A stretch of 64,000 nucleotides of DNA from Lepidodermella squamata (Eukaryota; Animalia; Gastrotricha): positions 4,588,001 through 4,652,000 of the forward strand of contig JBLDXI010000009.1 in NCBI GenBank assembly GCA_047495785.1, read 5' to 3'. Positions 4,629 to 35,400 of the stretch are shown here, piece by piece. Numbering within the stretch: position 1 is the stretch's first letter; each line of letters opens with the position of its first letter. Made by a program: the position numbers and the translations under genes. The notes below the pieces were generated by a model, which saw only the letters and a program-made list of their open reading frames with translations, was not told the DNA's origin and did not search any database.

Positions 4629-6636
4629 TCACAGCGGCTCTAAATCATCATCACTTTCTTCTTCGCCATCATCATCCTCGGATGGACTTTGACTTTCGAA
4701 TGAGCTCGATACATTATCGTCCTCGCCCTCCTCGAAATTTTCATTCACCGAGCCGGATATTTCGAAAGTTGGAGCTGAGTGAGCAACAGTCTGTTCGACA
4801 GCTGCTGTTATTTCCATGCTATTAGTCGGCAGACTTTGAGTCGATGAATCATGGTTTTGTCCAGAAACTGGGTCAACTTTATACTCCAATCCACCGCGCG
4901 TAATTGTCGACCGCCTTTCGCCGTCATACAGACTGCTAAACGTCGATCGGCGGATGAATCGGTTTTGAAAACGGGTCTGAATTCTTTCAACACTGCTCTT
5001 CGTCATTCGGTCGATAATACTTTGAATTGTGCTGATAAAGGACGCGACGAAAGCCATGCCGAAGAAAATCCAGAAGCATAGGAAAATTCGGTAGACCTCG
5101 TAGTAGTATTTCGGAGTTTGACCTGCGACGTAGTCACCGAAGCCAATCGTCGATAGGGTGACAAAACTGTAATACAAACTCGTTACATAATCCCAGCCCT
5201 CGAGATTGGAGAATAGAATTGAGGGTAATAATAGGAAAAGAGCCATGCCGACGATTGAAATGATCAAGGCGGACATGAGGGCGGCAAATCTGCGCTGGCG
5301 CCGCTCGCGCTTTCGCCGTCTCATGATTTGCTCTTCGTCATCATGTGACGAAGTCGGGTCGGCTCGCTCGCGGCGGTGGCGTATAGCCATGGCGCAGCGG
5401 TTCGTGCACCTTGCAACGCGGTCTGCGAATCGATTCAGCAGCTTGCCCATATTATTGATGACAATTAGTGTGAGCGGGATGCCGATGGTAGCGAATATTA
5501 CACAAATTAGCCGGCCAGTGTCTGAAATACAAAAAATGTAAGAAGCGCATGAAAATCCTTCACTAAACTCTGAACTTGAAGGGCTCTTATTGTCCTCCTT
5601 GGGGTACGTTTTTAAAGATGAATGCTGAATGCTGATTTTCCTTAACATTTTCCCAAACTAAAGTGTTTTGTTGCGAAGATATACTTTGCAAGTTTTCGAG
5701 AGCATCTCCGATCATTTATAAGCGATTTGACAGAATAATTCAACTTTTAATGCTTAAAAACCGGAAAAATCGATGGGGACCGAACAAGTTACCATTAGGA
5801 CGAAATATGAAGGCGGCTTTGTACGCTAACTGCGAACATTTTTCAAAGGAATAACTCAAAGTTGTTCCTGGCATTCTCCTGGTTCCTAACATTGTCTCTC
5901 ATTTTAGACTTTCTGATCCATTTATGCCGCTACCCACTATTTCCAATGGTTGTGTTACTTATGGGACACACTTCGGGAATTTATCAATTAATGCGTTAAT
6001 AGGTTAATATGTTTGCTAGAAGAATCGCCTTTTACCTGTTTCTGGTGCGTAATTGCCATACCCAATGGTTGTAACCACGGTGATGCAGAAAAATACCGAA
6101 CCAGTTAAATCCCATTTCGGCAGAGTCTGCTTAGTTTTGCACCCCGAGCCACCCGTCGTTGGCACCAAGTCGCCGTTTGTTGTCAAATTTTTCACGGCCG
6201 AGTCTGGCAATAGCCGAACAACAATACCAGTTTCGGTAATGTTGACCAGCTCATAACTGGTTACAAATTTTTGAAAAACTGTCAAAATCGCTTCGGTGAG
6301 GTTGATGTTTTTGAGATCAATGTCCAGTGTGATCAAATCATTTTTCGGCGTTGTTGATGTTGTTGGCGCCTGAGTAGTGGTCGCCATACGTTCCTGCTCG
6401 GCCGGGTGTTCAACCAGATAGAAAACCCACATTCCACCAATCAACCATAATATCATAAGGGAAAAGGATAGGAAATAGCTGACGAAACCAGCTGTTGGCC
6501 TGCAGCGTTTCCTCCGCCGTGAACTGCAGCATCGAGCTTCTCGCTGGGGTTCCTCGGAGAACGTGACACCTCGCTGCCGAGTTTCGTTAATGACATTGTT
6601 CGAACTCTGTATTACATCTTTCGATGAATTCTCCAT
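4629..6636 (-). CDS. Two-pore-domain potassium channel (K2P/KCNK family)
   Basis: Exon 1 is 6636-6036 (TM1, cap, pore 1 TTIGYG). Intron 6035-5522 is GT-AG. Exon 2 is 5521-4629 (GIPL motif, pore 2 STIGFGD, TM4, acidic tail). The spliced junction reads YAPETDTGR. Confidence 0.93.
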
Positions 6637-7350
6637 TTTAAACAAAGTACAAGCAAGTAAAATAACAAGTGCGATAATTATCGCAGCTTTTTCAGAGCTT
6701 GCCAACTTTTTTAGTAGGCGGAGTGTAGTGAGTTGGTATATCTTGTGGGAAAAAATAACACTGTAGATAACACTGTTTGACTTGATAACAACTAAAAGAG
6801 TGACGCTGCATTGCTAGGGCCTGATTTGCTTTCTGGAATTAAGGAATGGCTTCAAGGATTCCAAATGATTCCTCACTTAATTCCTAAGTCAGGAAAATCC
6901 TCCGATAATTAGTAGGGCTAGTGAATTAACTTGGAATGACAATCCGTTAACCAAAACGAATAAGCCACATTTTGTCAGCCTTCATCATTCATATATAACC
7001 ATCGCGAATTCCCCGAACATTTACCGGGGAATGGGGTGCATTTGGCTTGCCAAAAATGTAAAATGATTTTTTGCAAGAAACAATTTATTAAAACTCCATC
7101 ACCATATCTATTCTCTACGTACATTCCAAAACAACAGCCAGAAGCGGTAAACCTTAAAACCGAAAAGCAAGCATACCGCAGTATCACATGAAGTAAATGG
7201 CTCCACATCAATCTGCTCATCAAATCACGACTTCATCCGCAGCCAAATCATTAATATTCAAGTTAAATATTCTGATTCTTGCTGAGGTTAGGAACCGTCG
7301 GATTTTTTGAGGTTGGCCGATTTGAGTTCCTAAATAACGAACTAATATGA

Positions 7351-8247
7351 CTAGCGGGAATTCTCCTCAGCTTCTTCCTCGCGGGAAAATGGTTTCTTCT
7401 TACTGTTTTGGTGCTTCAAAATGTCCAGGAAATCCATGCGGGCATTCTCCTCAGCTTCTTCCTCGCGGGAAAAGGGTTTCTTCTTACTGTTTTGGTGCTT
7501 CAAAATGTCCAGGAAATCCATGCGGGCATTCTCCTCAGCTTCTTCCTCGCGGGAAAAGGGTTTCTTCTTACTGTTTTGGTGCTTCAAAATGTCCAGGAAA
7601 TCCATGCGGGCATTCTCCTCAGCTTCTTCCTCGCGGGAAAATGGTTTCTTCTTACTGTTTTGGTGCTTCAAAATGTCCAGGAAATCCATGCGGGCATTCT
7701 CCTCAGCTTCTTCCTCGCGGGAAAAGGGTTTCTTCTTACTGTTTTGGTGCTTCAAAATGTCCAGGAAATCCATGCGGGCATTCTCCTCAGCTTCTTCCTC
7801 GCGGGAAAAGGGTTTCTTCTTACTATTTTGGTGCTTCAAAATGTCCAGGAAATCCATGCGGGCATTCTCCTCAGCTTCTTCCTCGCGGGAAAAGGGTTTC
7901 TTCTTACTGTTTTGGTGCTTCAAAATGTCCAGGAAATCCATGCGGGCATTCTCCTCAGCTTCTTCCTCGCGGGAAAAGGGTTTCTTCTTACTATTTTGGT
8001 GCTTCAAAATGTCCAGGAAATCCATGCGGGCATTCTCCTCAGCTTCTTCCTCGCGGGAAAATGGTTTCCTCCGGACATTGTATCCAGCGTGTTGCATAGC
8101 GTCGAGGAAAGCATCGCGGGAATTCTCCTGGAGAGCTTCAGTCTCCAACAAGGCGATGGAAGCCTAAAGTGAGAAATGATATGATTGAATGAATTCGGTG
8201 CTGCAATTTTTTACCAGAATGCTGATTATCGATAGGAGCTTGGTCAT
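7351..8247 (-). CDS. Secreted multi-copy peptide precursor A (one DAFLDAMQHAGYNVRRKPFS plus 8 x MDFLDILKHQNSKKKPFS)
   Basis: Exon 1 is 8247-8215 (MTKLLSIISIL), followed by a 51-nt GT-AG intron and exon 2 at 8163-7351. Signal peptide is followed by 28-aa/84-bp repeats with REEEAEENAR linkers. Differences among the eight full repeats are synonymous in this frame only. Confidence 0.9.
7354..8068. repeat. 84-bp coding tandem repeat, about 8.5 copies
   Basis: Directly visible repeat unit attctcctcagcttcttcctcgcgggaaa... Confidence 0.95.
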
Positions 8248-8322
8248 TGCTAAAATTTGAAAACTAGGTGCCGAATATTACAGAGGAAAATTGAAAAGTG
8301 AAATTCTTATCCGCGAGGGGGC

Positions 8323-8424
8323 AATTTATAGGCGCTTGTCAACGGTGCACTGGCACCTGAGTTGACACGGATGCGAAATAATTCCACCACGTGGTGAATA
8401 TCGCCGAATTTTCGCTCACGTGAA
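8323..8424 (-). promoter_or_regulatory. TATA box (GCGCCTATAAATT) and CACGTG E-boxes of precursor A
   Basis: A 13-mer identical to the one upstream of precursor B, 76 bp from the ATG. CACGTG occurs at about 8388 and 8417. Confidence 0.65.
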
Positions 8425-9782
8425 AAATTATTTTCCGATGTGTGCTTTGGCAGGTGAAGTTTCATCGGCAAAAACAAGCTTATATTTTTGATGCTAAAAC
8501 CTCCACTAAGGCAATATATGCACTCATTATGACAAAACCGAACTCGATTGATGCTCATGGCGGTGCAGCGGCATATTAATTGGCGCCGAGAGATATTCAC
8601 GTGAATAAGATCCGAGCAGCTGGTAGGTGGTAGCAGGTGGATCTTTTTCACGAAAACATGTTTACCGGTTGAACTAACGTAGGCGAGGACAATGTGCGCG
8701 ATCGGTTGCGTGATTAACCGAACTCATCTACCCAATATTCAGATCCAGCGTCGTGGGTGCTAAGTGCCGTGAGGCAATAGGCCGTAATAATAAAGTCTTG
8801 TTCGTGCCAAGACCATTCAAATCCCTGTTCTACAGCTCTCAGTTCAAAGATCTTCGTCATGCCTCTTGCCTCCATCTGGAATAAACAGATTAATAGTGAA
8901 AACAGATTGGAATAAACAGATTAATAGTGAAAACAGATCTTTCAGAAGTCAAGATCGTGTTAGCTGGTTAGAACATGGTGCTACCTGTTTTATTGGGCTT
9001 GTTTGGAGTCAGTTTATAATAACAATAACAGTGCACTAGCACTCGTTGCAATATTGATATCCTCGCCTTCAGAAGAATTGCATGGTACTTTTCTTTGAAG
9101 CTTCAGAAGTGTCACGGTTTAGTGGTGCTGCAGTTAAAGTTGAGGGCAATTTTTCTAAAGAACCATTTCCCCTTTATTCGATTGAGCAAAAAACGAGTCG
9201 GCGTGGTCGAGTTCACTCAAGTGTTTATTCAAGGCGTTTATCTTAGAGGAATCTTAATTTCCCCTGGCTGCGTCTTTCACCATTGATTGCTTCTCCGCTT
9301 GGCTTCTAAGCTTTCGCTTCCTTGATAGATGCAGATCCAGTATAAATGGATAAATAATTTTCCTTTCTTTTGATGTTTAACGTAAAATTAGCATAATCAT
9401 GATCGCCTATATTATCTTCGACATCGCCGGTTGACTTGAAGAAAATGAAATGTCAACAGGAAACAGGACTAATCAAAGCTGGGTGATCTGCGGCCAAGGT
9501 CAAAGGAGAAAGGGGAGTAATGGCTGAATTTGGGCAAAATTGATGATTCAACCAACTAGACGATCCGACCGCTCAACCATTCGCTTTCCAGCATCGTAAT
9601 GCCTGAATAAGTCTCAAATTAGCTGCTATTACAAAGTTCAGATTACATCAAGGATCAAAGGATCTCATTGTTTATTCAGAAATTACTAAAACTTGGTAAA
9701 AGCTTAGTAAGAAATAACAATAACTCAGCTGATTTGAGATCCCACATCCAAATAAGCCACAATACTACATCGAGAAAAACAG

Positions 9783-10107
9783 TTAGCTTCCAGGTAGCTT
9801 AACTTTGTTTCCTGGCGTATTCTTGACAGACCAGGTCCAGGATTTCACGCGGGCAGCTTCCTCAGCTTCTTCCTCGCGATGGCTTCCAGGTAGCTTAACT
9901 TTGTTTCCTGGCGTATTCTTGACAGACCAGGTCCAGGAATTCACGCGGGCAGCTTCCTCAGCTTCATCTTCTGCTGCATCAGCTTGCATCGTCCAGATGA
10001 CGGTTATTGCCTTAAAACAAAAACAATTGATATGGAATATTGATGAACATATTTCTTGCTCGATGTGAGCTAACCAAAAGACCGGTGATCAGAAGGAACT
10101 TGTTCAT
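9783..10107 (-). CDS. Secreted peptide precursor B (2 x V[N/K]SWTWSVKNTPGNKVKLPGS[H])
   Basis: Exon 1 is 10107-10075 (MNKFLLITGLL), followed by a 64-nt GT-AG intron and exon 2 at 10010-9783. Contains a signal peptide, a 96-bp repeat and the linker REEEAEEAAR. Confidence 0.88.
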
Positions 10108-10183
10108 TGCCTGAGACTTGAATTCGAAAAATTGGGTTGATATGATAAAGAAACAAATTGAATATTCTGCTATCTGAGAGTCG

Positions 10184-10270
10184 AATTTATAGGCGCACCA
10201 ATGCTTCGCGTCGACATCTGAATAGACATTAGGGAAGATCTGACGTCATTTGGCTAATTCTTCACGTGAA
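10184..10270 (-). promoter_or_regulatory. TATA box (GCGCCTATAAATT), CRE (TGACGTCA) and E-box of precursor B
   Basis: 13-mer at 10184-10196, 77 bp from the ATG. tgacgtca at 10241-10248 and tcacgtgaa at 10262-10270. Confidence 0.65.
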
Positions 10271-10837: not shown

Positions 10838-13448
10838 TCAAGTCTGCCCTGCGGCCATGTTGCAGATATTGTCTCGCGCGTCCAGGTAAATCAGCGGCAG
10901 GAACAGAAAACCAGGAATAACTGCCGCCAACGTTGCACATACGGCAAAGGTTATAACGTCAATCTTATACGCCAATTCCTTCCAAAGACGAGAGTTCCTT
11001 GCTCTGAAACCGAGACTCAACTTCGATGGGACCCCTCGATTGCGTCTCGGCATCCATTTCGGTTGCGCGTTACTCTTCGAAAATTGTTGCGATAGGCCGG
11101 AATGTTCGAGCACTAGCAGTCGGTGTTCAGATATTCTCTCTGAGTCGCGAACACTTAGACCGACGGGCGCTGGACTGGAGCCGAAAAGAGTTCGCAAGGA
11201 TCTTTCACGACGCCGCCGAAAGTAGCTTGCGAACTTGAAACCAGCATTACGAGGCCTTTGGCCGCTATATCGAGCCGCTCGAACTTGATCAAGTGTATCG
11301 CCTGAAACCACGCCCGAGCCTAGGACAGCTCTTTCGTAGGCTGCAGTACCGAGACGTTGCCTAGCCACAGCGCAAGTGTAAGATAAGCGGCGAGGTAGCT
11401 CGGCCCCACTACTCGTTCGAGGAGACTGGACCTAAATAATGTTAATCGAAGTTAATATTTTTTAAAATTCATGAATTCATGGAAGAATTGAATAGTTTTC
11501 AGTATTCTCTGAATACGACTGAAATTCCCTGACATTTGTATATTTTTCGACCGATCAGAAGAAGGTATGACTTCGACTAAACCATATCGACTAACTTTCA
11601 TTATCATCACGTCAAGACTCACCTGGTTACCTCCCGAGCGACGCTGTGCTTGGTAAAACTGGTTCTCAGCATGAATAGCTTCAGCAAGGGGTGAGACTGG
11701 CGAATCGAGCAGAACACTTCGAGTCTTTTGATTGGCGTAGCATACAGCAGTCGGTCGTCGAAGTGCAATCGGTGGCGAATCAGGCGCCCGCCGACCAACC
11801 GGTTCCTCGGTATCACTCGAGTGGCGAGGCGGCCCATCGCCGCTGCTGTCTTCCCGATCGAGATTTAGCACGTCTTCGTTCGCATCTTGATCGGGCATCT
11901 CACGCCACACGATGGGGATGGGGCGCATCAAACGCACTAAAAAGCGAGGGGGCGGGAGGCGTTGCGTCGTTAGCAACCGCTCTACAGCAACAGATTCGAA
12001 TATTCCAACAGCAGACAGCACGATCAGCGCGATGATGTACTTAGACAATGCCGTAACCGCGTCAGATGTTTTCGGCTACGACAAAACGGATATTCGTTCT
12101 ACTGGAAATTTGTTTCATTTTCACACTCACCATTTCCTCTGTTACAATAGTTTGAAACACGACCAAGGTCAGCAAATTAGTTGTACCGAACCCAATACGA
12201 TCTGCAGTTGTGTCTTGGGACGAAATAATGAACACTGACATTTGAATCATCGATAGCGTGGCACATGGGAAGATCAAGTTAATGATGTAAAACGTCGACT
12301 TTCGCTTCACGGAAATGTCGAAGCGCAATCGCGTGAACGTCTCATTCGTGAAATACGTGTGGTCGTAAGTCTATTTGACAGAAAAATCACGTTTTTAAAA
12401 CCAATGCACCAGTAATAAGCCTGCTGATGACGCAGGTTGAAAGGTGCAAGCGGCGAGTTCACTTACCGTAGCCTTCCACTGGCAAATTGTCCACAATTGC
12501 GAGACGAAAGATGTATCAAGCTGAAAGAAGAAAGTAAAAACGAAGTCTTTCCCAAGGCTTCTTGAAGAAAACTCACCAGCAACTCACTGGTCCCATCAAA
12601 TGTCATTGACGAACTATCAAGCGACCATGATTCGAATTCCAGTGAACATTTTTGGTAGTCGAAAGGAAACGTCACCAGTTTCAAATCACACCATGTTCGA
12701 GCCGTGCCCGTCGGAACATACTTGAGGGAGCCATCACTCGAAACTCGAACATTGAACCGATTGTCCCTTGTAATTGAGTACAAATGATCCGCGGAATTCG
12801 TCATCTGAGAGAAAAATCAGATGTTAATAACTAACATGAGTTAAAGAGTCAAATTACCGCAATATCAGGCAGGCCAACTTGATCAGGGTCAAGGGATAGG
12901 TACGTTATGTTAGCGTACTGTTTCGGGTCCCATTGTAACCTTTTATCCTGCCATTCGATGAAAAGGGCAATGACCGACTCGAAAATGCCCTCCTTTTCCA
13001 CTGTCGATTTGACCTTGATCAATAACACATCCATATGAACAATCAACGGCTTGACAATCTGCGCAGCTTTGTGGTAGTTTGAGAACAGCCTCCTAATCAA
13101 AGCCGTTGAAATGCCACTATGAGCTATCGTTGCGTTGTAATCAGACGCATTTCTCAAAGCGGATGCTTTTGAACTGACCGAGGGGTCTGATGCAGCTAAT
13201 GGAGTCTCCTCGGTCATCATTAGATCGTCCTCATAAAACTGGTTAGGCACGGGACGCTCGCCCAAAATCAGCCCGTTGGAAAGAGACGACGACGCGGACG
13301 CGGAGTTGCCGAAGTTAGTCTGGCGGCTCGAGTCAGGGCCCTTGAATGAGTTTGAAGAAGCTGCTGAAGGGACCAGGCCTGCTCTTAACATGCATTCGAC
13401 GCTCACCATTGGCAGCAGAAAAATTATTATAGATAGGTTTATCGCCAT
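10838..13448 (-). CDS. Cys-loop ligand-gated ion channel subunit (nAChR/5-HT3-like, non-alpha)
   Basis: Six exons: 13448-12858, 12804-12577, 12520-12467, 12370-12131, 12075-11623, 11431-10838. Features are a signal peptide, WQDKRLQW, Cys-loop CDLKLVTFPFDYQKC, M1 FYIINLIFP, M2 DRIGFGTTNLLTLVVF, PKTSD and M4 WKELAYKID. Confidence 0.92.
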
Positions 13449-17561: not shown

Positions 17562-20081
17562 ATGATTTTCTTCGTACTCATCCTTGCATTCGTTTCTCTA
17601 AGCCACGGTCAGGTCGTCGTTACGACATCTAATAACTTGCAAGATCAGCCTAGAATATCTATACCAGTGCTGATTCCTATCTCCAGCAGCCAACAACGAG
17701 ATGGCAAGCTATGTCGAGCCGCGATGGAGTACGTGATGACGAAGATAAACAACGAAATGGATGACATATTGCCGAACTACAACGTCGAAGCGAGAATCGT
17801 GGACGAAGGCAACGGCGCCCCGGCAATTCAAACTATATCGAACTATGGCAGGAACGTTCTCAGGATCCGAAATGCCACAATGAAAGAAGTATTCCCATCT
17901 CCTGTTTTCGTTGGACCGATATCTGGAGCTGGATGCCAACGGGTCGCTGCATTCGCCCATCATTACGACTTGACTGGTGTCACATTTGGATGTACTCAAC
18001 TGTCTATTACTGGAAACAGGCGAGTTTATCCGAATATGTATCGAATACGAATTCCACAGGAGTTGGTAAGCTTCCCGAGGCTCAAATTCATCACAGAAAT
18101 AGGCAACTGGTCTCAAATCGCCATTATCGTGAATGCGTCCAGCCCTTCAGATTTCGAGCTATCCGCCCAGTTTCAAAGGGACAGCCGGAAAGCTGGCGTG
18201 AAGGTTGCATGGTATAATGCTGCCCTTTTCTTAGACGAAACTCTACTCCAAAGCCTGAAAGACAGCGAATCTCGAATAATTGTCCTGGGAATGACTTCAA
18301 TTGACAACACTCTCATGTTCTTCTGCGAAGCTTTCCGATTTGGAATAACTGGGTCCAAGTATATTTTCATCGCTGTGATCAGCGCCTATTCGAATCCTTA
18401 CGTTCTACCAGAGACAATTTACGACGGATGCTCGCGAGATACTGTAATCGAGCAGCTGAAGTACACTTATTGGATCGGGTCTTTATTCTCCGGCTTGGCA
18501 AGTGAGAATAAGGCCATTTCGAAACTTGGGATCAACATGACACAGTTCGATGCAGAGTTCGCTCAAAATATGACGATAACCGCGGATTATGAAAGGCGTC
18601 ATTCTTGTGCAGACGCGATGCTCCAAGCCGTCCTAACTCTTGACGAGTCGGAAAAGAACCTGAACAAAATCGGTCTCACCCTCAGTCAATTCGTCGAGAA
18701 TTCGGCAGAAATCATGAGAATCGTGAACGAGACTGCCTCGAAAATGGAGTACTCTGGCTTCCGCATTGGTTTGCAGAAATACTCGGAGCGACTTGAGGTC
18801 GACTATGAGCCGCAATATGTAGCCTACTGGTCTCCCGAGAGATCGTTCCATGCGACTCATCGAATTGTAAGAACTCGTTACGCTCCACTAGATGATATTC
18901 GCAGCTACAAAATGGAGCAAATTGTGAAGCCAAAGTGGAAAACAACGAATAAACAGCCACCAAGGGACGAACCCCCAGCGCTGAGGTACATCGAAGATTT
19001 CATACCGATCGAGGGCTTCGGCGTGATTGTCGCGATGGTATGCTTTCTGAGCCCGATTCAGATCCAGCTTATCATCCAAATGTTTTGGTCGTGCAATAAT
19101 TTGAAATTCAAAGCTCTACTCCCTATCAGCAGAGTCATTTTTCTCATAAGCTGCCTCAGTCTTAATACTTCTGCTGTACTGTTCGCCTCAACTCATTTCC
19201 CTGTGGTGAGGCAGCTTGGAATCTGTTATTCCAAGTTCGTTCTAGCTGCGTTCGGCATAACAGGTTGCATGGCGTTCCTTCTCGGAAAACTCGGCATTGC
19301 CTACAAGCGATTTCACAAAGATGCCGTGAAAATGGCAAAGCAAAAGAAGCAAATAAACCCGCCGACTGTAGCCGTCAAAAAGGCAGCAACGGCACCGATG
19401 AGGGCGGCTATCAACCGAAAAATAATCCAAATCAACGCGCGGATCAGCCGTGGCAGTAGCCAGTGGAGTAAGACCAAAAAGCAAGAAATGATGGTTTCAT
19501 CGATCGTCCTAGCTTTTATACTAGCTGATGTCATCTTTCTAATTTCTTGGTTCAAGATTGACATTGTTCAAATTGTATTCCGCCTGGTATCTCAGGATAT
19601 GACCTACGATGAAACTGCGGATAATTACTTCAAACACGTTATAAGAATTTGCTTCTCAGAAAGTGACAGCGAATGGCTGGTCGGCCTCGGGGCCATTGAT
19701 CTATTTATCAGCGGGGCTGGAATGTTTTTGGCCTACACTTTGAAGGTAGTCGCCTCTCAATTTCGAAGCGAAAATTATGGCGATTTACAATTTGTTAGAA
19801 TTTCCATGCTTATCAGCTCTACAATCCTATTTGTCGGAGCTTTTCTTATTGGTGTGATGCCAATCGATGGATTGTCGAAAAGTATGATTGCATCTTTCTC
19901 CCTTCTAATTATGTCAGGTTCCGTTACATTAATATTATTCTACAATGTCATTGTGTGGAATGTTCAGTTTCTATTCATGGTAGTGACAAGGCCGTTTAGA
20001 CCCTCTGAGCATTCGATTAGCAGTTTTACGCAAAGTCCACTACCCGTGTCATACCATGCAACGGAGCCTCCTCGAAATTGA
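17562..20081 (+). CDS. GABA-B-like class C GPCR (Venus flytrap + 7TM), intronless
   Basis: Signal peptide, INN..DILPNY motif, YPNMYR, WSQIAII and SRIIVL. Seven hydrophobic segments and no cysteine-rich domain. TATA at 17521. Confidence 0.88.
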   Translation: MIFFVLILAFVSLSHGQVVVTTSNNLQDQPRISIPVLIPISSSQQRDGKLCRAAMEYVMTKINNEMDDILPNYNVEARIVDEGNGAPAIQTISNYGRNVLRIRNATMKEVFPSPVFVGPISGAGCQRVAAFAHHYDLTGVTFGCTQLSITGNRRVYPNMYRIRIPQELVSFPRLKFITEIGNWSQIAIIVNASSPSDFELSAQFQRDSRKAGVKVAWYNAALFLDETLLQSLKDSESRIIVLGMTSIDNTLMFFCEAFRFGITGSKYIFIAVISAYSNPYVLPETIYDGCSRDTVIEQLKYTYWIGSLFSGLASENKAISKLGINMTQFDAEFAQNMTITADYERRHSCADAMLQAVLTLDESEKNLNKIGLTLSQFVENSAEIMRIVNETASKMEYSGFRIGLQKYSERLEVDYEPQYVAYWSPERSFHATHRIVRTRYAPLDDIRSYKMEQIVKPKWKTTNKQPPRDEPPALRYIEDFIPIEGFGVIVAMVCFLSPIQIQLIIQMFWSCNNLKFKALLPISRVIFLISCLSLNTSAVLFASTHFPVVRQLGICYSKFVLAAFGITGCMAFLLGKLGIAYKRFHKDAVKMAKQKKQINPPTVAVKKAATAPMRAAINRKIIQINARISRGSSQWSKTKKQEMMVSSIVLAFILADVIFLISWFKIDIVQIVFRLVSQDMTYDETADNYFKHVIRICFSESDSEWLVGLGAIDLFISGAGMFLAYTLKVVASQFRSENYGDLQFVRISMLISSTILFVGAFLIGVMPIDGLSKSMIASFSLLIMSGSVTLILFYNVIVWNVQFLFMVVTRPFRPSEHSISSFTQSPLPVSYHATEPPRN

Positions 20082-21037: not shown

Positions 21038-23509
21038 TTAATGTAGAGAAAATGCTGGATGACCGCTGAATTCATCTCTCAGTGCAACTTTTCGCTCATT
21101 TCCCGCCGTCGCAATCAGATGGCTGCAGTGGCACACCTTACTGCCAAACTCCTTCCTAGAATTACTCATAGCTGGGAGAAACTCAAGTCCAAGAGTGGTA
21201 TTTGCTAGGAAGAAAGCGTTGATGCATAACAGCGTCGATTTCAAGTACAAGCTTGGCAGCAAAATTTGGTCAACTACTGTTCCAATGCAGACAGACATAA
21301 CAAACTGAGATAGGGCGATTACGACACAGCTTTTAGCCGCCGTGGCTTCATGCCTTAAGCAGACATCCAAGTTAGAAAGATTGAGACTTTGTGATAAGAA
21401 AACACCCAAAACAAGGGGCAGAAAATTGATTCCTACCAGGCTGGCCATTAAGGCGAAATTTCTCTCTACCGCGCAAACTGACATGGAATAACTCAGATAG
21501 ATATTTGATTCGATATCAAGAATGGCTGGAGTCATTTTGTAGATCAGAGGATGTCGCCGATTACCTTTATCAAGCCCCAAGAACACTCCTGATACAACTA
21601 TGTTCAAAAGCAGGAAAACTGCTCCGCATACAACGGTTTTTCTATCCCTTTCGACATTGTTCAAAACAGGCAGATCTCTGGCTAATGAGCTTCTAGGAGC
21701 GTACAAGCTATTTCGCTTCCTAGTAATTGTGAGATATCTTGCCGTATAAAAACTGCCCAAGGGATTTTGAAACAAATGATGATTCGCTGCATATCTCGTG
21801 TGGGGTACGCCCTGAATAACTGTGATGCATCGGTAAATAGTCACGATTTTCCCGAATATTAAACCAGAAATTATTGCCAGAGCATAAAATGGGAAAATTC
21901 GTTGAACGGTGCAGATGAGGAGAGGATAAGTAGCTGCGTCTATCGTAAATGCAATTGGCATCAGGTTAATCAACAAGCAACCAGCCAATAAAGCAAAATT
22001 TGATATCTTCTGCGAAAAAATGCCATTAGAACTCATCACTACTTTGTAGGTGTATGCGGCATGGCTCAGGAAGAAAGCGAAAGCAATCGATGCAATTGCT
22101 ATGACGAATGCCGTGCCTACGGTAATTTCAACCACTTTCCGTTTCGACAAATCCGGGGGTGGCTGGTTCAGTTTTGTCAACCAAATAGGCTTAGCTATCT
22201 GGGTGAAGTTGTAGAAATTCAAATCGTAAAGCGACGAAGCATTCGACCCAGTAAATAGGCATTGATATAGTATTATAAGGGAGCCATTGACGTATTGACT
22301 GACATACTGAAGTTCGTTGTCGACCTCAAGCCGGTCCGAGTATGTTATCCGGCCTATCCGCAGTCCAATAAAGTCACTCCTTGCTGCTGTTTGATTCACC
22401 ACGCCACCAATCAAGTTGGGGAAATTTTCGAAATCTTGAAGGCTCAGATTGTGAGCTGCTTTCAGCTCAGTATCGGCTTTATGAAGAGTGAGAAGGGCTT
22501 GTTGCATTGTGTCGTGGCATCGATGCCTTCTTTCGTAGTCTGGCGTTCGCGATCCATTCGTTTTTCTGTCCAAAAGCCGCTCAAAACCATCTAGGTCATA
22601 TCCCAAGTCGGTCATTCCATTATTTTCAATTGCCCAATCAACTGGGCCAACCCAAAATGTTATTCTAAGTTGCTCCATTATCATTGATTGTTTACAACCT
22701 GTGGGCAGCTTCACGTCGCTCAATGGGTTGAAGAAAGTTGTTGCGGCGACCAGAAACACATATTGCCAGCCGGATATGTCATTCATGTATGTGAGGCATA
22801 GGAATTGAACAAATTTTGGGATGTCACTGAATTGGACCATAATAACCCGAGCGTCGCTGGATCTGAGATCTAGAGCTACGGCATTGTCCATGTCTACAAC
22901 GCTGCCGAACCATACGACATCGATCCCAGCTTCCACAGCCTTCGAGTACAGCAGCTTTGACCTGATGTAGTCGTTTGAGTTCGCGGCGTTCGAAATGATC
23001 CCGATTTGTTTCCAACGGCCGACTTTGACCGCGAAAAGAAGTTGAGGAATGAGAAAAGCGTCAGTAGGTATATGATTCTTGTACAAGTTGGGAAAATTCA
23101 CGCGATCTCCGGTTACAAGCGGCCCCAAGCAGCTTGTGGCGAACTGGACCATGCTGTGTTGCGACACTATTCTAGCGTTGTTCTGACAGTTTTTGTCATT
23201 GCCGATAATTACGGGGGCAAGAAATTGTTTGCCAGACTGGTTCCAGTTAAGCAGAAACTTTGCGACTTCTCTGGGGCCGAAATTCGAAGCCGGACCCTCA
23301 TCGCGGTAATCGACTGAGATTGAATAACTCGGCAATATATCATTTCTTTCGTTCACAGCGTCAACCGAAACTTGGGCTGCGGCAAGACATGTTTTTCCAT
23401 CTCTTGGCTCACTCCCAGATAGGGGAATCAAAGCGAGGAGCTTCAAGTTGAATGGCTTAGCAGCGAGTGACGAAATGAATATGATGAAGAAAATAAATTT
23501 GCCGAGCAT
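21038..23509 (-). CDS. GABA-B-like class C GPCR, intronless
   Basis: Signal peptide, VNERNDILPSY, FPNLYK, WKQIGII and ARVIMV, then 7TM. Shares RDGKxC, DYERRHxC and YS[E/D]RLEVD with the 17562 gene. Confidence 0.88.
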   Translation of the reverse strand: MLGKFIFFIIFISSLAAKPFNLKLLALIPLSGSEPRDGKTCLAAAQVSVDAVNERNDILPSYSISVDYRDEGPASNFGPREVAKFLLNWNQSGKQFLAPVIIGNDKNCQNNARIVSQHSMVQFATSCLGPLVTGDRVNFPNLYKNHIPTDAFLIPQLLFAVKVGRWKQIGIISNAANSNDYIRSKLLYSKAVEAGIDVVWFGSVVDMDNAVALDLRSSDARVIMVQFSDIPKFVQFLCLTYMNDISGWQYVFLVAATTFFNPLSDVKLPTGCKQSMIMEQLRITFWVGPVDWAIENNGMTDLGYDLDGFERLLDRKTNGSRTPDYERRHRCHDTMQQALLTLHKADTELKAAHNLSLQDFENFPNLIGGVVNQTAARSDFIGLRIGRITYSDRLEVDNELQYVSQYVNGSLIILYQCLFTGSNASSLYDLNFYNFTQIAKPIWLTKLNQPPPDLSKRKVVEITVGTAFVIAIASIAFAFFLSHAAYTYKVVMSSNGIFSQKISNFALLAGCLLINLMPIAFTIDAATYPLLICTVQRIFPFYALAIISGLIFGKIVTIYRCITVIQGVPHTRYAANHHLFQNPLGSFYTARYLTITRKRNSLYAPRSSLARDLPVLNNVERDRKTVVCGAVFLLLNIVVSGVFLGLDKGNRRHPLIYKMTPAILDIESNIYLSYSMSVCAVERNFALMASLVGINFLPLVLGVFLSQSLNLSNLDVCLRHEATAAKSCVVIALSQFVMSVCIGTVVDQILLPSLYLKSTLLCINAFFLANTTLGLEFLPAMSNSRKEFGSKVCHCSHLIATAGNERKVALRDEFSGHPAFSLH

Positions 23510-24673: not shown

Positions 24674-24764
24674 TGACATCTACTCCGAAAATTGAACGGC
24701 AGAATTGCTGCAGCAGATTATTTGTTCCCAATATATTGCAAGTTTATTTTTCCACAAAAATTCG

Positions 24765-26189
24765 ATGGCACATGATATAGCTTTAGTCTTGAGCTTGCTC
24801 CAACATAAAATTTGGTACTTCATTTTCGTTCTGGTTCCGGTTTACAAACATCGACTGGCAGCATTGTTCGTGAAATACATGCCACAGAAGAAATCATGGG
24901 AAGTTTTAGATAGCAACAACATCGACCTGTCTAAGGGGCCTCTGAGTTCCGAGTTCGGCTTCATGCCAAACCCGTTACACTTGGCCGAAGCTGATAGAAT
25001 GCTTCCTGAAGTTATTCGGGAGGTTATCGCACTAATTCCCGAGTGGTATGCAAATGGAACTGTGCGGAAACGGTTATCAGAGATTCCTAGCTTCTCATGT
25101 GATGGCGTTAGTGGCCTGGCCCTTTTCAGAGCAAAACAGGCGTTGCAAATTATCTCGCAGACATATATCGACTGCGGTCGTCCGATGGAGCAGGTTCTCA
25201 CTGGAACAACAGGAGCTTACATTCCTCCGTTGCCCCCAGCTCTGCAGGAAGAACTGTGGAAGTTGTCGAACACCCTCGATACCTCTTCTCGTTTATCTCT
25301 CCTCGATATTCTGGCCGATGTTAGTTTCACAGACGACTTCCTTCAAAGATTTGCTGCTGGCCAAATAACACTAATCGACGCGCAGTGGAGCGATCTGAAG
25401 CTGTTTGTTGAATGTCTTTCTGGGCTAAGACCTGGCGAGGCTGAAAGTGACCGCGAGCTTCGAGCATTAATTGAAACAAGGTTCCACACACTGGTTGCTC
25501 TGATGTTGTGCAATTCCTCAGATTTTCCGAGAATCATTGCCGAGGTTCAAAAGACAATGCATTTTGCAATGCGAGATGGTACAGATCTTGCAAAGGCTGT
25601 CTCGTCAGTTGTCAAAAATATTGACGAATTGATCGAATCATGGCGGCGAATGACACGAGCGTTTGAGACATTTCAGATGAAAGAATGCCCACCAACGGTT
25701 TGGCACTCCCACATTGCAAAGCTGTCAGCTGGAGCTTTCATGTTCCCGGCTCCTTCCGGTGCTGAATCTATACCCGTTGCAATTTTGGATGTTATGTTAG
25801 GCCGAAGTTCCTACTCAACCGAAATAGGGCAGCTAGCAATTGCTGGTTGGGAAAAGGCTCCCTACAACCATCGTCAATTCCTGGGAGCTGTACAAGCTGG
25901 TCCCCGTTTCACAGATTTTTTGAACTACGTCAGAAGAAATGGCGATAAGCGATCATTTGATTTGTTGAATGATGCAGTTAGCAGGCTATTCAACGAGCAT
26001 GTCAATGAAGGCTTCTTAGCAGCTCATCGCCGTAAGGCCTACTCCTACCTGCATCATGGATTTAAGGCTGGCCAGCGATCTATCACCGGCGGCACATTCT
26101 ATCATCCAAATGATATGAACCCAGCACATAACATACGTGAGGAACTCCAGTTGGCAATCAACGAACGTAACAACCCGGCCTATGGTTAA
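24765..26189 (+). CDS. Indoleamine-2,3-dioxygenase/PrnB-like heme dioxygenase superfamily protein, intronless
   Basis: LSSEFGFMP (compare IDO N-terminal GF[L/M]P), SGAES, HRQFL, a candidate proximal His in HRRKAYSYL, and the ITGGT motif. The start codon is uncertain (24765 or 24879). Confidence 0.72.
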   Translation: MAHDIALVLSLLQHKIWYFIFVLVPVYKHRLAALFVKYMPQKKSWEVLDSNNIDLSKGPLSSEFGFMPNPLHLAEADRMLPEVIREVIALIPEWYANGTVRKRLSEIPSFSCDGVSGLALFRAKQALQIISQTYIDCGRPMEQVLTGTTGAYIPPLPPALQEELWKLSNTLDTSSRLSLLDILADVSFTDDFLQRFAAGQITLIDAQWSDLKLFVECLSGLRPGEAESDRELRALIETRFHTLVALMLCNSSDFPRIIAEVQKTMHFAMRDGTDLAKAVSSVVKNIDELIESWRRMTRAFETFQMKECPPTVWHSHIAKLSAGAFMFPAPSGAESIPVAILDVMLGRSSYSTEIGQLAIAGWEKAPYNHRQFLGAVQAGPRFTDFLNYVRRNGDKRSFDLLNDAVSRLFNEHVNEGFLAAHRRKAYSYLHHGFKAGQRSITGGTFYHPNDMNPAHNIREELQLAINERNNPAYG

Positions 26190-28299: not shown

Positions 28300-29958
28300 A
28301 GTCACGCGGTCAAGCTAGCTAAAAGCTAACATGAAAGCTTAGTCTCATAGCTTCATAGTTCATAGGATTCGGCCGAACGATTGCAAGGAAAAATTTTGGT
28401 GTCATCAATCTGTTCATCATCCGAGCCACTACTGGGCGCTTCGTCCCAGGGAGGCTGTTGAAACTTCCGAACAAAACACCCCGCCTGGCACAAAGCACCA
28501 AGCTTCAGTAATAACTTCTTCTATTCTTTTAATTATTTTAGTATATTCCTACTTTTATTACAATTTTTGGCAAGTGAAGCCCTATTATTGTTTTGGTCAA
28601 TTTGGTTCAATTTATCACAGATTGAAATAATATAAAGAAATCAAATAACTGCCGAAACGACATTGTTTCAACTTCGATTCCTTTTTTGAATTGACCCGAA
28701 TCAAAATGTCCTGGTAGGAGTGTTCCTGCACTAGACGCTAAAAACTCCTCGGAGTTGATATTCACCAGCAAAAATATACTCCGGGAGTTTATTTTGTAGG
28801 GAGTCACTCCTCACTATTACACCGCCGAGAGCATAATACGGCATATGTCAATGACGGCTCACACCCAATGCCACAAATTTGGAGCCAGTTTGATTTATTG
28901 TCGAAAGCACGCATTTTCTCGGCTATTGATATAAATCAGGCTTATTTTCACATGAAAGTGTCCGGCGATTCAAAGCAATATTTAGGGTTCAGATCATCCC
29001 AGGGGTCCTGGACCATGAATAGAATGCCTTTCGGTGCTCAAACCGCCCCGGCCTATTGGAACCGTCTGCTCACGTTCTGCATGACTGGTTTACTGGGCCG
29101 CATCGTCGCCACTTATTTCGACGATATTCTAGTTTTCAGCCCGAATAAAGAACAACATTTTCATGATCTTCGCACCGTGCTTGAGCGCATGCGTAAAATG
29201 AACTTGAAAATTAAGGGTTCAAAATGTCAGCTTTTTCGTCGCTCCATCACCTATCTTGGCCACACTATTAGCCAGGATGGTTTATCTATTTTTCGGGAAC
29301 GCGTTTCGAAGATCCAGAATTTTCCCGTCCCTACGACGGTTAGCGAACTTCGAGCTTTTACCTCGTTAGCCGGATATTATCGGCGATTTATCAAGAATTT
29401 TGCGATGATCGCAGCTCCGTTATACGAGCTACAACGTAAGAACAACTTTCACTGGAATAAGGATGCCGAGAATGCTTTTAAAGAGCTCAAAAAGACGTTG
29501 ATCTCGCCACCTTGTTTGGCCTTTCCTCAGTTTGACAATAAATTTATTCGGGTGCGTGCGATTGACACTCTATAAACGGTAAAACTGCTACTAAAACAGG
29601 CACGCGAATTGCTATTATTTCGCGCGAAGTGTTACATAATAGGTCAAAGTGCGCACGAAACGTCAGGTGTGCTGATAAACAACAAAATGTGACGCTAAAT
29701 ATGGTGGAGGGCTTGTATTTTGATGAAACTGATGTTAATCCGCCAATTCGCTCCTATTTTATGTACTTTTACCATTAATTCCTGTTATCACTATTTTTCA
29801 CGCTCTCAGCTTTTCACCTAGACGTTTAAGATGGCAACAAATTTTTTGATGATGAAAATGAGCAACTCAGCTCATCTGAAGGCGAATCGTCGTCGAATGA
29901 GGACCAGGAGAATGACCAAGATTCGGCAGACCTCAGCGATCAAGGTGATGATGAAGAC

Positions 29959-32406
29959 ATGGGGGCTTCGCAGCGCGGCGGTGTGAGAGGCGGCGAACAA
30001 TGTTGGCGCCTTGCTGGTCGCTTTGCTTCACTGGAAGACGCATCAATTTACGCCACGAAGCTGAACCCAGACGCCAAATGGACCACTGGTCAAAGCTATC
30101 GCACCGCTGACGGCGAGAAGCGATACAAAAACTGCTCTAAATGCGGTCGAGGCGAAAATAAGCAGTGTTTTTCACAAATTCATTACCTGCTACATGCCGA
30201 TTGCATGGACGTGTCAGTTTACGTCAACGACCGCCAACACACTCACACAAAGTAATTTTTTATGAATTTATTTGATATTTTAGAATTATTTTAGATTTTA
30301 GAATTACCCCCACTTGCGTATTTCCCACTTGCGTATCTAAGCTAAAACCAAACTTTAAACAAATTCAAACCTAACCCTAACCCTAACCCTAACCCTAACC
30401 CTAACCTTAACCCTAACCCCAACCCTAACCCTAAACCTAAACCTAAACCTGACCCTAACCCTAACCCTAAACCTAACCCTAAAAAAAGATACGCAAGTGG
30501 GAAATACGCAAGTGGGGTACACCCAGATTTTAATAGATATTTTTAAATTTTTTAAAAACATTAAAAAAAATTTATAATACCTAGTTTACAAAATTCCAAA
30601 ATATTTTTTAATTTTTTTTTAATTTTATTTATCAAGAAACAAAACCCGAGGTTTGCCGGAAGAATTCATCCAAAGGATTAGGGAGGCTTACTTGGAAGGT
30701 GGTTTGACGAAACCTGGGCAGGTCAAAAATTTTCTGACACACAAATTCGGCGCAGAACGAATGAAGACGATTAAAGACGAGAAAATCAAGTATGAATTAC
30801 GCAAAGTGAAAAATGGGAACAAAACGAACACTGCGCCATTCCAGTTATCTGACTTTTACGATTTTGCCGAAAAATACAGCGAAATCGACAAGAATGATCT
30901 AGATAAGCCATTCGTGATGAAACTCGAAGTGAAACCGACCGAAGGCAAGCGGAAGCAGGAGTTCCGGCTCGTTCTTTCCACGCCGCGCCTCATCAGCCAT
31001 CACAAGTTTGCTGGGCCTCTTCATATCGATGCTACCCACAAGTTGAACTGGAAGAATTTGCCTGTAATGCTCGCAGGGACATCTGATAAAGATAATCACT
31101 TTCATCCTACGGCGATCGCCTTGACATCCGGTGAGACTGAGGACGACTTCAAAGCGATTTTCAAGGCCATGAAATCCGGTTATGACCGTGTAATGAGTGA
31201 GTTGTTTGTTTATGTGTTCGCACACTCTTGACTCTCTTGACTCTTGTTTACTTAGGTACTCAAATGCCGACCCCTTCAGTTATCGTGCGCGATGGGGCGA
31301 CTGCTATTGCTAATGCGGCAGACGAAGAGTTCCCTGGTGTGAAGCAGGTCATGTGCTGGGCCCACGTGCTGCGCAACTGCGACAAGCGGTTCTGTTTGGC
31401 ACCAGCTGATCTTCGTGAGGAATTACGCGCTGACATCGATATTATCCAGCTTAGCCGCAGCACGGCTATGTTCGCTGCATCTTCGCAACTGTTCCTTGAC
31501 AAATGGGCTGAGTTGGCGCCGGATTTTGCCGAGTATTTCCGCGAGGAATGGCTCGATAATTCCGTGCGAAATACCTGGTTCGAAGGGTTTGCTGATGGCG
31601 ATCCTTCCACCAACAACGGAAATGAATCCTACAATGATTTGCTGAAGCGACAATTTACGCTCCGCGAGCGGCTGCCCATTGCTCAACTGCTGGCTTTATT
31701 TGTCGAGCGCGTTTTGCCTGCGTGGTCTAGAAACCGAGACATCGAAGACGTTAATTGTAAGACATTTTTCGTTGCGCCCTCAGTCACTGATGCTCTTTGG
31801 CTGGATGCGGTCCACTGGAGCGACCAGAAGATCAAGCAAGTCGAGTTCGAGCATCAGTCTTATTATGTTTTCAGATGGTCAAATGCGTCTGCGATCACCA
31901 AAACTGAAGCTAACACCTACCGACGACAAATGAAATCGTTGAAGTGGGCGGATTTCGACGATTTCAAAGTTTTCGTGCGAGAGCGTTGCCTTCTCACCAA
32001 AATCATGGCGCCCGCGTGCCCATGCGAAGATTTCGTTGCAACTGGCGATTGCCTTCATTCGCATTTTAAATGCTCGTGTTCGGACTATCAAAAGCGCCAC
32101 ATTTGCCATCACTCGCTTGGGATGAGTATCCGCCAGAACTTGGTGACGGTTCCGCCTAAATTCGAGGCCAATGAGCCGGTCGAAGGTCGTCGGGCTGGTG
32201 GCCGGATGAAGAGGGCGGTCAAAGCCTTGTTAGAGCAGCCGGCAGATCGTGTGGCTCGATCGATTTCCACTGAGGCCGGCCGGCCTGCTAAGCCTGCTAA
32301 GCGATCGGCTGTTAAGCGATCGGTCTCCACTACTACTACTGCTTCTACTACTGCTGCTACTAATGACAATTCGTTCACTGCCTCTAAAAAACAGCGGAAA
32401 AATTAA
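29959..32406 (+). CDS. MULE DDE transposase with SWIM zinc finger (spliced; 5' end uncertain)
   Basis: HIDATHK, VRDGATA, CWAH, STNNGNESYN and SWIM CSCSDYQKRHICHH. Introns at about 30252-30636 and about 31190-31256. Confidence 0.85.
30307..30517. mobile_element. MITE with an internal (CCCTAA)n telomere-like array
   Basis: TIRs ccccacttgcgtatttcccacttgcgtatc and gatacgcaagtgggaaatacgcaagtgggg, flanked by TA. The telomeric array spans about 30368-30482. Confidence 0.85.
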
Positions 32407-35400
32407 CATTTCTTCGTTCTTTTTCTCCGTTCTAATAAAAGTTGACCGTTGTCCGCGTTTTAACAGCCAGTTGTTCTATTTAGAGGTACATTATTCAAAA
32501 TGCGCGCACTTTGCGTGATTTATAAGCAATTTACACGCTTTCAGCAGTTTCACTGATTTAGTAGCAGTTTACACTCGTTTTGGTAGCGCATTTATTTTCA
32601 CTCAATTTATTCTATCGACTGATGCGTCGGGGTCCGGTCTCGGCTACGTTCTCGAAGAAGACCAGGACGACGGTACCCGGCGCCCAGTCGCCTTCGGTTC
32701 TCGAAATCTGACTAAGGCCGAGCGCAATTATTCTAGTTGTGAACGAGAGGTTCTTGCCGTCCTGTACGGGCTAAAGCAGATTAAGCCTTACATCTCGCCG
32801 GGTTTGAATTCGATTACCACCGACGTCAATACTGACGCCGCTGCTCTTCGCACTTTGAATACCTGGAAGGACACCGGAGGTCGGTTGTCCAACTACCTGA
32901 TGATCCTACAACAATATCCGCTGAATATAATAACGCGCCGAGGTTCGACTCATGCGAATGCCGGTGCGATGTCGCGTACGCCTGATCGAGCTACGCCACT
33001 CCCGGCTTCCATCAACGCGATGACATCCGATCTTACTTTCGATGACGATATTGTTGTCGACGAGAACGCGTACCACGAGGGCGACCCGTTCCGCTCTCTC
33101 ACGCCCTGTGGCGAACTTGACTCGCGATGTTTTGATTTCGTCGATGTAGCTCCAAGAAACGCCGCCTTCGTCACAATTAAAAGCAGCGTAGCAAATATTT
33201 CTTAGCGCCTGATGGCTTGTTGTGTCGCTACTACCCTGCCTCTTAATCGGTTACCAGATCGTCGTACCTGAAAATCTCATCGTCACCGTGCTACACGCTA
33301 TGCATGACGAGAAATGTCATTTCGGCGTTAAACGCACCCTATCCACCTTAAAAGATCGATTCTATTTTCGCAATTACGAGGAAATTACTGCCGAATACGT
33401 CAAATCATGCGCGGTGAGCCAAATTCGTGATCACCCTGTGAAACATCCGCGTGCTCCGATGGAGCCCATCTTTTCGCATGACGTGAATTCTCACCTGGGA
33501 CGTAGCCGGTCCATACCCTACGTCTCGTCGTGGAATGCGCTATATTCTCATCATTTTCGATCATTTCAGTGGCTTCACGCTGTGGCAGCCCATTCCGGAT
33601 ATTAAGTCCGAAGCCATGATAGAGAAATTGCTCGACTGGATCTACATTTTCGGTAGCCCGCGTGCTTTGCTCAATGACAACGCCCGCTACTTCATCTCCA
33701 AGCTCATCGAGGACGTGACTGATGCGTTTGCGATTGGCCGTATTAAAAGCTCAGCTTATCACCAGCAGACTATCGGTCATTGCGAACACTTGAATTTTGT
33801 CATGAATAACTGCATCGCGAAATACGTCGTGCCCGGCCAGCACCTCGACTGGTGCCGCTTCGTCAAGGCCTGTTGCTCCGGCTACAACTCGTCTCACAAT
33901 TCGAAACATCGCCACCCACCAGCGTATCTTATGCTAGGTCACATGCCCAAGTTGGCTATGGACTGGCAGTGCTTCGCCGAGAAGAGGCCATGGCAACTAA
34001 AATTATCCGCCAGTTACAAATCTCACCCAGGCACAACGAAACGGTCAAATTACTAACCCAGGATGTCCCACTGTTTGTCTCGGCCTGGATGTCTATCACC
34101 GGCGCCGATCAACCCGATGTCATCGACGTTACAATTCGAGCGAAACTTCCGGTTATAAGGAACTCGGTCTGCAACATCATCGCGTTGTCTCCCATCAGCT
34201 TGCTTGGAAACCACAGCTGTCTAACTGCACCGCGATCTGTCTACATCCGCCATCCAATGCTCAAACCAGCCTGTCCGCCTATTTCCCACCAGCTGCCTCG
34301 ACGCTTGCACCACAATCTCACCCCACAAAATCGTCTGCCCGCTTGAATTCTGCGATATTTCCACGACACCTGACTGGCTGCAACAGACCGGCCTCGTCGC
34401 TGATTCCGGACACGTCTTAGCTCACGATCCCGTTATCAGCTCGTAAGCCTAGTTCAACTGGTGCGAACAAGCCAGCGATGTTGTGCGACTTAACCACAGC
34501 TCGTTCCTCCTTCAAAAACCGGCGACTGTCTCACTTTGGCGCGTTAATGGCACCGCCAGAATACTAATTTTTAGTCGAAAATATTCGCAAAGTGGCCACA
34601 TTTTCCACCTCTCTTGCAATCACATCATTAAAATTGGCGACTCCGAATTACACCCATCGGCCTTTGAATGCGACGAGGATCTGCGCCAAGAGATACTAAC
34701 GGTCACCGAGTCGGGTCGATTAAAGCTGCTTGACCCCAATACCAGCGATTACCCGACCCAACACAGCAATCGTCGCCAGCCTAAAGGATTCAACGATGCG
34801 TGACGAGTTCAACCGTAATGACGCTACAACACTGCGGCTCGTCGAAAATATCAGCGCCGGCTCGGCCCAATTAGGTCTCTTCACGCAGCTGATGAGTATC
34901 TACGTTGGACAAATCGGCTCCTCCAACGACACCCACCCAGCGCTGCTCTCTTTTCTGCCAACCGGAGCGGACTCGCTCATCCTTGCACTAAATACCGTCG
35001 CTATAATTTACCTCATCTGCAATAGAAATCGCCCTCCAAATCCGCTTCAAATCCAGACAATAATGCCGGCACTCCAAGTCCCAACCGCCCCACAACCGCC
35101 AGGATACGTAATACCGTCAACGGCCATCCCGCTCGACAAAGCCAACGAAGCGGAACCAAAACCACAGCCGCGCAAAAAGCGCTTCTACTATTGAAAGTCA
35201 AATAATCACGAAGTTTTGTATATTTACCAGTGATTCTGAAAATTGTAAATTCTCGCGCAATATTATTATCGAATTTTGTTCTCTCTCTTGCCATTTTACT
35301 CCTTTTTTCTCCTGCTTTCCAGGAGTAAAGCACTATTTCACCTGGGGAATGTGCTATGCCGACGCAAGTCGAGCGCGATTGGTCCGCATACCAACCAATA

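Follow-up and report, generated by a model that had tools for sequence, protein, structure and literature searches.

Linear venom peptides of spiders (latarcins, cupiennins and oxyopinins) are released from complex precursors whose cleavage sites follow two mirror-image rules: a processing quadruplet motif (PQM), with Arg at position -1 and one Glu or more at -2 to -4, and its inverted form (iPQM), with Arg at position 1 and one Glu or more at 2 to 4 (PMC6832493, PMC8290080). The linkers between the peptides carry Arg at both ends and are mostly 5-13 residues long, cupiennin transcripts may close with a terminal linker, and insertion, deletion or frameshift variants that create new peptides have been reported (PMC7889660, PMC8290080, PMC6832493). 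Here we analyse two adjacent minus-strand genes, gene 1 (7351-8247) and gene 2 (9783-10107), in a stretch of 64,000 nucleotides from the gastrotrich Lepidodermella squamata (contig JBLDXI010000009.1, positions 4,588,001 to 4,652,000; hereafter the window, whose own numbering is used throughout). Both encode an acidic pro-piece and several segments, here called cargos, parted by acidic linkers with Arg at either end. On balance we lean towards reading them as secreted polyprotein precursors that would be cut at those linkers to yield peptides of an exocrine or a defence/communication type.

Acidic linkers conform to the spider processing rules

The ten-residue linkers read REEEAEENAR in gene 1 and REEEAEEAAR in gene 2, and their shared 20-nt core occurs 10 times in the window, always within these two genes and against a chance expectation of none. 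Gene 1 contains an 84-nt unit present 8.5 times and gene 2 a 96-nt unit present 1.9 times, each at 98% identity. These linkers, and the count of eight cargos against two, had been proposed in a sequence-only reading of this DNA and were confirmed; gene 1 additionally has a divergent first copy, which brings its cargos to nine (one divergent and eight near-identical), and a terminal linker ahead of the stop codon. Cys is absent from the exon 2 products of both genes.

Judged by the published definitions, the PQM rule holds at 12 of 12 sites (the pro-piece, eight linkers and terminal linker of gene 1, and the pro-piece and linker of gene 2), with a Glu at -4 in all of them. The iPQM rule likewise holds for all ten linkers, nine in gene 1 and one in gene 2, each of which starts Arg-Glu-Glu-Glu and has a net charge of -3. 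The PQM-like layout suggested earlier thus fits at every linker and every pro-piece end. The repeated cargos contain seven or eight Lys and no Arg, the pattern that an Arg-specific cut would select for; among the cargos, only the divergent first copy in gene 1 departs from this, with a single RRK.

Across the eight units of gene 1 only two columns vary. In the proposed frame the two fall at third positions and are synonymous, and they cause at least one residue change in each of the five other frames, which lends weak support to the proposed coding frame. The near-identity of the units implies that the expansion is recent or has been homogenised. Searches of the 64-kb window with blastn, tblastn and motif patterns found no further paralogue.

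Coding on the opposite strand was considered and rejected. Three plus-strand frames are open over the gene 1 array, at about 250 codons each. One of them, at 7347-8099 (+) and open for 250 codons, mimics a peptide array flanked by Gly-Lys-Arg. Both variable columns alter residues in that frame, hitting the basic pair and a Cys; moreover, it has no hydrophobic N terminus, and the corresponding antisense frame of gene 2 is unrelated to it.

Two tandem paralogues share one gene plan

Both genes comprise a TATA element, a short first exon, a short predicted phase-0 intron and a second exon that carries everything from the end of the predicted signal sequence to the stop codon (Table 1); the tandem minus-strand arrangement, the 33-nt first exons and the introns all lie where the sequence-only reading had placed them. 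Intron retention introduces an in-frame stop in either gene, and in neither can the exon 2 frame be extended upstream, so a hydrophobic N terminus needs the splice that is common to both paralogues. The predicted signal sequence would combine the n-region and hydrophobic residues of exon 1 with the six hydrophobic or small residues that open exon 2 of gene 1, after which the sequence turns polar and acidic. A 17-nt context around the ATG is found at these two genes only. The signal exon had been described as common to both genes, which holds for its architecture but not for its sequence: exon 1 is identical at 22 of 33 nt and 5 of 11 residues, against 27 of 30 nt for the linker.

The promoters share their elements as well. 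The same 13-nt TATA element ends 76 or 77 nt ahead of each ATG; it occurs twice in 64 kb, and still only twice when up to two mismatches are allowed. A TCA trinucleotide follows in each gene, its A at 8299 in gene 1 and 10159 in gene 2, 31 and 32 nt past the first T of TATAAA, the spacing expected of an initiator, and we call both sites initiator-like. Four of the window's 13 CACGTG sites and three of its four TCACGTGA sites fall 360-400 nt or less upstream of the two ATGs (Poisson P ~2e-5 in a post hoc test), and an 11-nt stretch around the TCACGTGA site at 8416-8423 is common to both promoters. The previously noted pairing of an identical TATA element with nearby CACGTG boxes is present in both genes. 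Away from these motifs the promoters align poorly, which indicates old paralogues with conserved elements. As judged from the DNA, the layout of promoter, exon and intron is common to the two genes far beyond chance. The spacer that separates them also contains a perfect 31-nt direct duplication (8877-8938).

The two cargo types are related in different reading frames

The cargos of the two genes had been regarded as swapped and unrelated. This is correct for the proteins but not for the DNA: when the units are aligned, conservation extends past the linker into the cargo, whose first 15 nt are homologous and read in different frames (12 of 15 identical with one 1-nt gap; best of 5,000 shuffles 11, P=0.0002). 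The nucleotides that read Phe-Leu-Asp (FLD) in gene 1 read Ser-Trp-Thr (SWT) in gene 2, and the +2 frame of gene 2 gives an FLD-type start like that of both gene 1 cargo versions, where FLD is kept through a synonymous Leu change. At their other end, both cargo types close with K-x-P-x-S ahead of the linker Arg, the Ser codons coming from different families. From this we infer that the conserved cassette extends beyond the linker, that the FLD type is ancestral, and that the core of the gene 2 cargo arose by a frame shift in an FLD-type unit, a shift compensated before the next linker, and was then duplicated. Frameshift divergence within one conserved unit would describe the relation better than an exchange of cargos.

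The cargos carry a net charge of +2 to +4; their hydrophobic moment, 0.19-0.21 across the full peptide, reaches 0.34-0.38 in the best 11-mer. Low charge and weak amphipathicity suggest a poor fit to membrane-lytic peptides; of the roles proposed previously, the antimicrobial or cytolytic one is thereby weakened, and toxin, pheromone and neuropeptide are not separable on sequence. Single-sequence AlphaFold2 models fold the linker and the N-terminal half of the gene 1 cargo into one helix that breaks at Pro (mean pLDDT 74), and give strand or coil for the gene 2 cargo at a confidence too low to use (pLDDT 47).

No described relatives of the family were found, and zinc-finger matches are artefactual

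In a set of 5.8 billion proteins, exon 2 of gene 1 had no match at E<=0.01 and exon 2 of gene 2 none at E<=0.1. The precursors had no match in the PDB and none in Pfam that passed its cut-off, whether to a neuropeptide family or to any other, and the peptide and linker strings were not found in the literature. A metagenome scan with a permissive two-linker DNA pattern returned more than 120 stretches, of which those inspected among the matches listed were generic Glu-rich or TPR-like low-complexity sequence, with no resemblance to the family; a stricter two-linker pattern had no match in prokaryotic genomes, as expected. The family is thus an apparent orphan in all the protein, structure, DNA-pattern and literature collections searched, as its earlier description as an undescribed family had implied, and is most likely lineage-restricted. 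The source lineage itself seems absent from the protein collections, or very divergent within them (the best relative of the P5B-type ATPase in the window is 33% identical).

An exhaustive HMMER search of gene 1 exon 2 against 1.84 billion representatives did return 60 matches. C2H2 zinc-finger arrays stood at the top (E=3e-35), and 37 of the 60 matches contained at least three fingers, as would be seen if gene 1 were a degenerate zinc-finger array that had acquired a signal exon. The arrays have the same 28-residue period as gene 1, and KPFS and KHQ lie in register between the gene 1 units (7354-8055) and the zinc-finger arrays P0121, P0123 and P0125. However, a single gene 1 unit scores only 21.6 bits (E=13), and of 100 arrays built from a shuffled unit, 15 score no lower than 40 bits on the same proteins, the best scoring 300. 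Among the zinc-finger models of Pfam, E<=10 brought up only a DHX34-type model, below threshold (23.2 bits against a cut-off of 27) and with no single stretch passing; the gene 1 product has no Cys ligands; and what gene 1 and gene 2 have in common is the linker, the part that would take the place of the Cys knuckle. On the shuffle control and the Pfam result we rejected a zinc-finger origin, which is extremely improbable, and attribute the matches to resonance between two 28-residue periods. They serve as a warning that tandem-repeat queries inflate E-values.

The layout resembles that of other multipeptide precursors

The likeness to spider complex precursors (PMC7889660, PMC8290080, PMC6832493) extends over the whole layout: a signal followed by a short anionic pro-piece that ends Glu..Arg, several cationic, Cys-free peptides parted by short anionic linkers with Arg at both ends, a linker length (10) inside the reported 5 to 13 residues, one linker that recurs within the family, and the option of a terminal linker. 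No sequence similarity to the spider peptides was detected, however, and the peptides of these two genes are shorter, are weak in charge and amphipathicity and lack Gly at the C terminus, and the copies are identical where spider copies are diverse. Spider genomes are large, with long introns and lower GC, whereas the DNA here is compact, with introns of 51-64 nt, many large intronless genes, a GC content of 43% and a CpG observed/expected ratio of 1.15. By analogy, the two genes would work like spider complex precursors, but no homology to these was found, and the genes are filed under no known family.

Hymenopteran multipeptide precursors (ant hymenoptaecin and bee apidaecin) similarly have one 5' intron and an acidic spacer beside a basic cleavage site, and consist of a signal and pro-piece, a divergent first copy and then direct repeats in a single exon, the repeats amplifying dose; they use dibasic RR or KR sites and an EAEP spacer that is removed by dipeptidyl aminopeptidase (PMC3415428). 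The genes described here have instead a single Arg at both linker ends, no X-Ala/X-Pro dipeptide series and no homology to those precursors. Amphibian skin peptide precursors also join a conserved signal and acidic pro-piece to rapidly changing cargo, with the signal on a separate first exon as here; unlike here, they usually hold one cargo each, which is released at Lys-Arg, and they belong to a vertebrate lineage. The searches we ran found no similarity to them.

Proposed processing and competing explanations

Under the reading we favour, each gene would be transcribed from its TATA and initiator promoter bearing TCACGTGA E-boxes, and the transcript would be spliced across the short phase-0 intron that splits the signal sequence. 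After removal of the signal, an Arg-specific endoprotease would cut behind the Arg that bounds each linker on either side and behind the one that closes the pro-piece, and a carboxypeptidase would trim the exposed Arg. The predicted products are one 20-residue and eight 18-residue 'FLD' peptides from gene 1, two 'SWTW' peptides of 21 and 22 residues from gene 2, and acidic linker peptides from both precursors. The cassette, made up of the K-x-P-x-S tail of one cargo, the linker and the opening codons of the cargo that follows, would act as the processing module, and the variable core between cassettes would be the product; the gene 2 core would stem from an FLD-type unit by a shift of one nucleotide, with the frame regained before the next linker. 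A broader claim, which we put forward tentatively and consider doubtful, is that PQM/iPQM-like processing operates in a non-spider animal lineage, where it serves lineage-specific peptides renewed by frame shifts inside a conserved cassette.

The most serious competitor is that both genes encode conventional neuropeptide or hormone precursors for subtilisin-like convertases: gene 1 would be cut at its tribasic KKK/RRK sites to release a product that spans the acidic linker, and the genes would be expressed in neuronal or endocrine cells in an activity-regulated manner. Many identical copies in one precursor would suit such a role, as would the tribasic sites, which the divergent gene 1 copy and the repeated ones have in the same position. 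In gene 2, by contrast, di- and tribasic sites are entirely absent, and in gene 1 KKK/RRK lies only inside the cargo rather than flanking the copies, no cargo copy ends in the Gly needed for amidation, and no neuropeptide family matched in Pfam or elsewhere, so that the classical bilaterian neuropeptide features are wanting. A perfect TGACGTCA palindrome sits between the gene 2 E-box and its TATA element, although the number of such sites in the window is at chance level, and the neighbouring Cys-loop channel, K2P channels and GABA-B-like receptors would be congenial company, although such linkage proves nothing. The cargo has changed wholly between the paralogues while the linker was kept, an unusual pattern for receptor-tied ligands. 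We regard neuropeptide precursors as unlikely. Instead of conserved neuropeptides, the peptides are most likely fast-evolving extracellular products of exocrine or defence/communication type.

That the proteins are secreted but never cut, with gene 1 forming Pro-punctuated charged helices of structural, lipid-binding or protective use, is distinctly less probable. AlphaFold2 gives helix-break-helix repeats of about 23 residues at moderate confidence, and the protein alternates between acidic and basic blocks, yet gene 2 has the cassette with two units only, and the low-confidence model of its cargo shows strand or coil. It is not obvious why a protein that stays uncut should have boundaries of Arg only and cargos with Lys only, and no structural repeat family matched in Pfam or the PDB. 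Slightly less probable again are young or decaying open reading frames (ORFs), a coding minisatellite with a frameshifted paralogue, open by chance and with no functional product. This would agree with the want of homologues in the protein sets searched, with near-identical repeats that point to recent expansion, and with the several antisense frames that are open across the array too. It sits poorly with the retention in both genes of the TATA element, initiator-like site, ATG context, splice sites and in-frame linkers, with the recovery of the linker frame in gene 2 after the shift and the duplication of the new unit, and with FLD being preserved in the divergent gene 1 copy by a synonymous change.

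Several points weigh against precursors cut at the linkers and renewed by frame shift. We know of no PQM-type protease outside spiders, and conventional convertases could instead cut at KKK/RRK inside the gene 1 cargo. An unanchored local alignment of the cargo start reaches only P=0.0135, the frameshift argument spans about 15 nt, and the synonymous-site argument draws on two sites. The strong identity of the linkers could reflect gene conversion rather than selection, and the copy number of the 84-nt array of gene 1 may be mis-assembled.

If the genes are expressed and their products cut as predicted, a processing rule thought nearly peculiar to spider venom exists elsewhere, either independently or by deeper ancestry. 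They would then offer a clean, datable case in which a frame shift made a new secreted peptide with the cleavage cassette preserved, and so a concrete mechanism for the pattern of conserved prepro-region and hypervariable cargo seen in many toxin and defence families; the cassette would also be a search handle for more orphan peptide genes in the same genome. If they are not expressed, they are a lineage-specific tandem duplicate of an ordinary kind that includes a coding minisatellite.

Genomic surroundings

Table 1. Coordinates of the two peptide genes, their promoter elements and the neighbouring genes, in window numbering
Feature	Position	Strand	Description
Gene 1 distal E-box	8597-8604		TCACGTGA palindrome; one of four TCACGTGA sites in window
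Gene 1 promoter E-boxes	8388-8423		CACGTG at 8388-8393; TCACGTGA at 8416-8423
Gene 1 TATA element	8323-8335	-	13 nt
Gene 1 exon 1	8215-8247	-	33 nt; ATG and 10 further codons; third residue Lys, followed by 8 uncharged ones, most of them hydrophobic
Gene 1 intron	8164-8214	-	51 nt, GT..AG, phase 0; position and phase match gene 2; 3' end is an in-frame TAG
Gene 1 exon 2	7351-8163	-	270 codons and stop
Gene 1 exon 2 start		-	6 hydrophobic or small residues, then 10-residue acidic pro-piece ending in Arg
Gene 1 divergent first cargo	8056-8115	-	20 residues
Gene 1 linker and cargo units	7384-8055	-	Eight units of 84 nt; 10-residue linker REEEAEENAR and 18-residue cargo
Gene 1 terminal linker	7354-7383	-	Followed by stop
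Gene 1 first downstream AATAAA	7084-7089	-	262 nt past stop
Gene 2 promoter palindromes	10241-10269		TCACGTGA at 10262-10269; sole TGACGTCA of window at 10241-10248
Gene 2 TATA element	10184-10196	-	13 nt, identical to gene 1 copy
Gene 2 exon 1	10075-10107	-	33 nt, 11 codons
Gene 2 intron	10011-10074	-	64 nt, GT..AG, phase 0
Gene 2 exon 2	9783-10010	-	75 codons and stop
Gene 2 exon 2 start		-	10 residues completing the hydrophobic/c-region
Gene 2 acidic pro-piece	9945-9980	-	12 residues
Gene 2 cargo A	9879-9944	-	22 residues
Gene 2 linker	9849-9878	-	REEEAEEAAR, 10 residues
Gene 2 cargo B	9786-9848	-	21 residues, followed by stop
Gene 2 AATAAA	9671-9676	-	107 nt past stop
K2P channels	4629-6705		Pfam/PDB comparison
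Cys-loop channel	10838-13448		5-HT3/nicotinic kind; Pfam/PDB comparison
Class C receptor gene	17562-20081	+	Intronless; ANF_receptor and 7tm_3; closest in PDB is GABA-B subunit 1
Class C receptor gene	21038-23509	-	Intronless; ANF_receptor alone; GABA-B-like
P5B-type cation ATPase	36424-39300	+	Intronless; best relative 33% identical (crab entry; 5.8 billion proteins)
NLR-like paralogue	39695-43328	-	NB-ARC and ankyrin repeats in one long ORF
NLR-like paralogue	57512-61136	-	NB-ARC and ankyrin repeats in one long ORF

The window is gene-dense (GC 0.434), and the neighbours of the peptide genes are recognizably animal-type. Several of its large genes are intronless, the ORF blocks of the Cys-loop channel gene lie less than about 140 nt apart, and the two K2P ORF blocks are separated by 367 nt. 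No tRNA or Rfam family was found in the window, and no lineage-specific Pfam family among its proteins. The ORF directly upstream of the NLR-like gene at 57512-61136 matches TIR and, faintly, DUF1684; its counterpart directly upstream of the gene at 39695-43328 has the faint DUF1684 match only. A 494-codon ORF at 24705-26189 (+) matches indoleamine 2,3-dioxygenase below threshold (25.3 bits, with the cut-off at 26).

Repeats and traces of mobile elements are scattered through the rest. Arrays with periods of 14-15 and 29 nt lie at 1837-1909, 2288-2356 and 2476-2548, the first two of which are mutually reverse-complementary, in the manner of a DNA transposon's subterminal repeats. About 19 CCCTAA units form an interstitial array (30370-30482) just upstream of two ORFs that match MULE/Mutator transposases (30653-32406). 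Separate ORFs at 28868-29575, 33222-33605, 52116-53114 and 54571-55995 match reverse transcriptase, RNase H and an integrase zinc-binding domain and appear to be retroelement remains.

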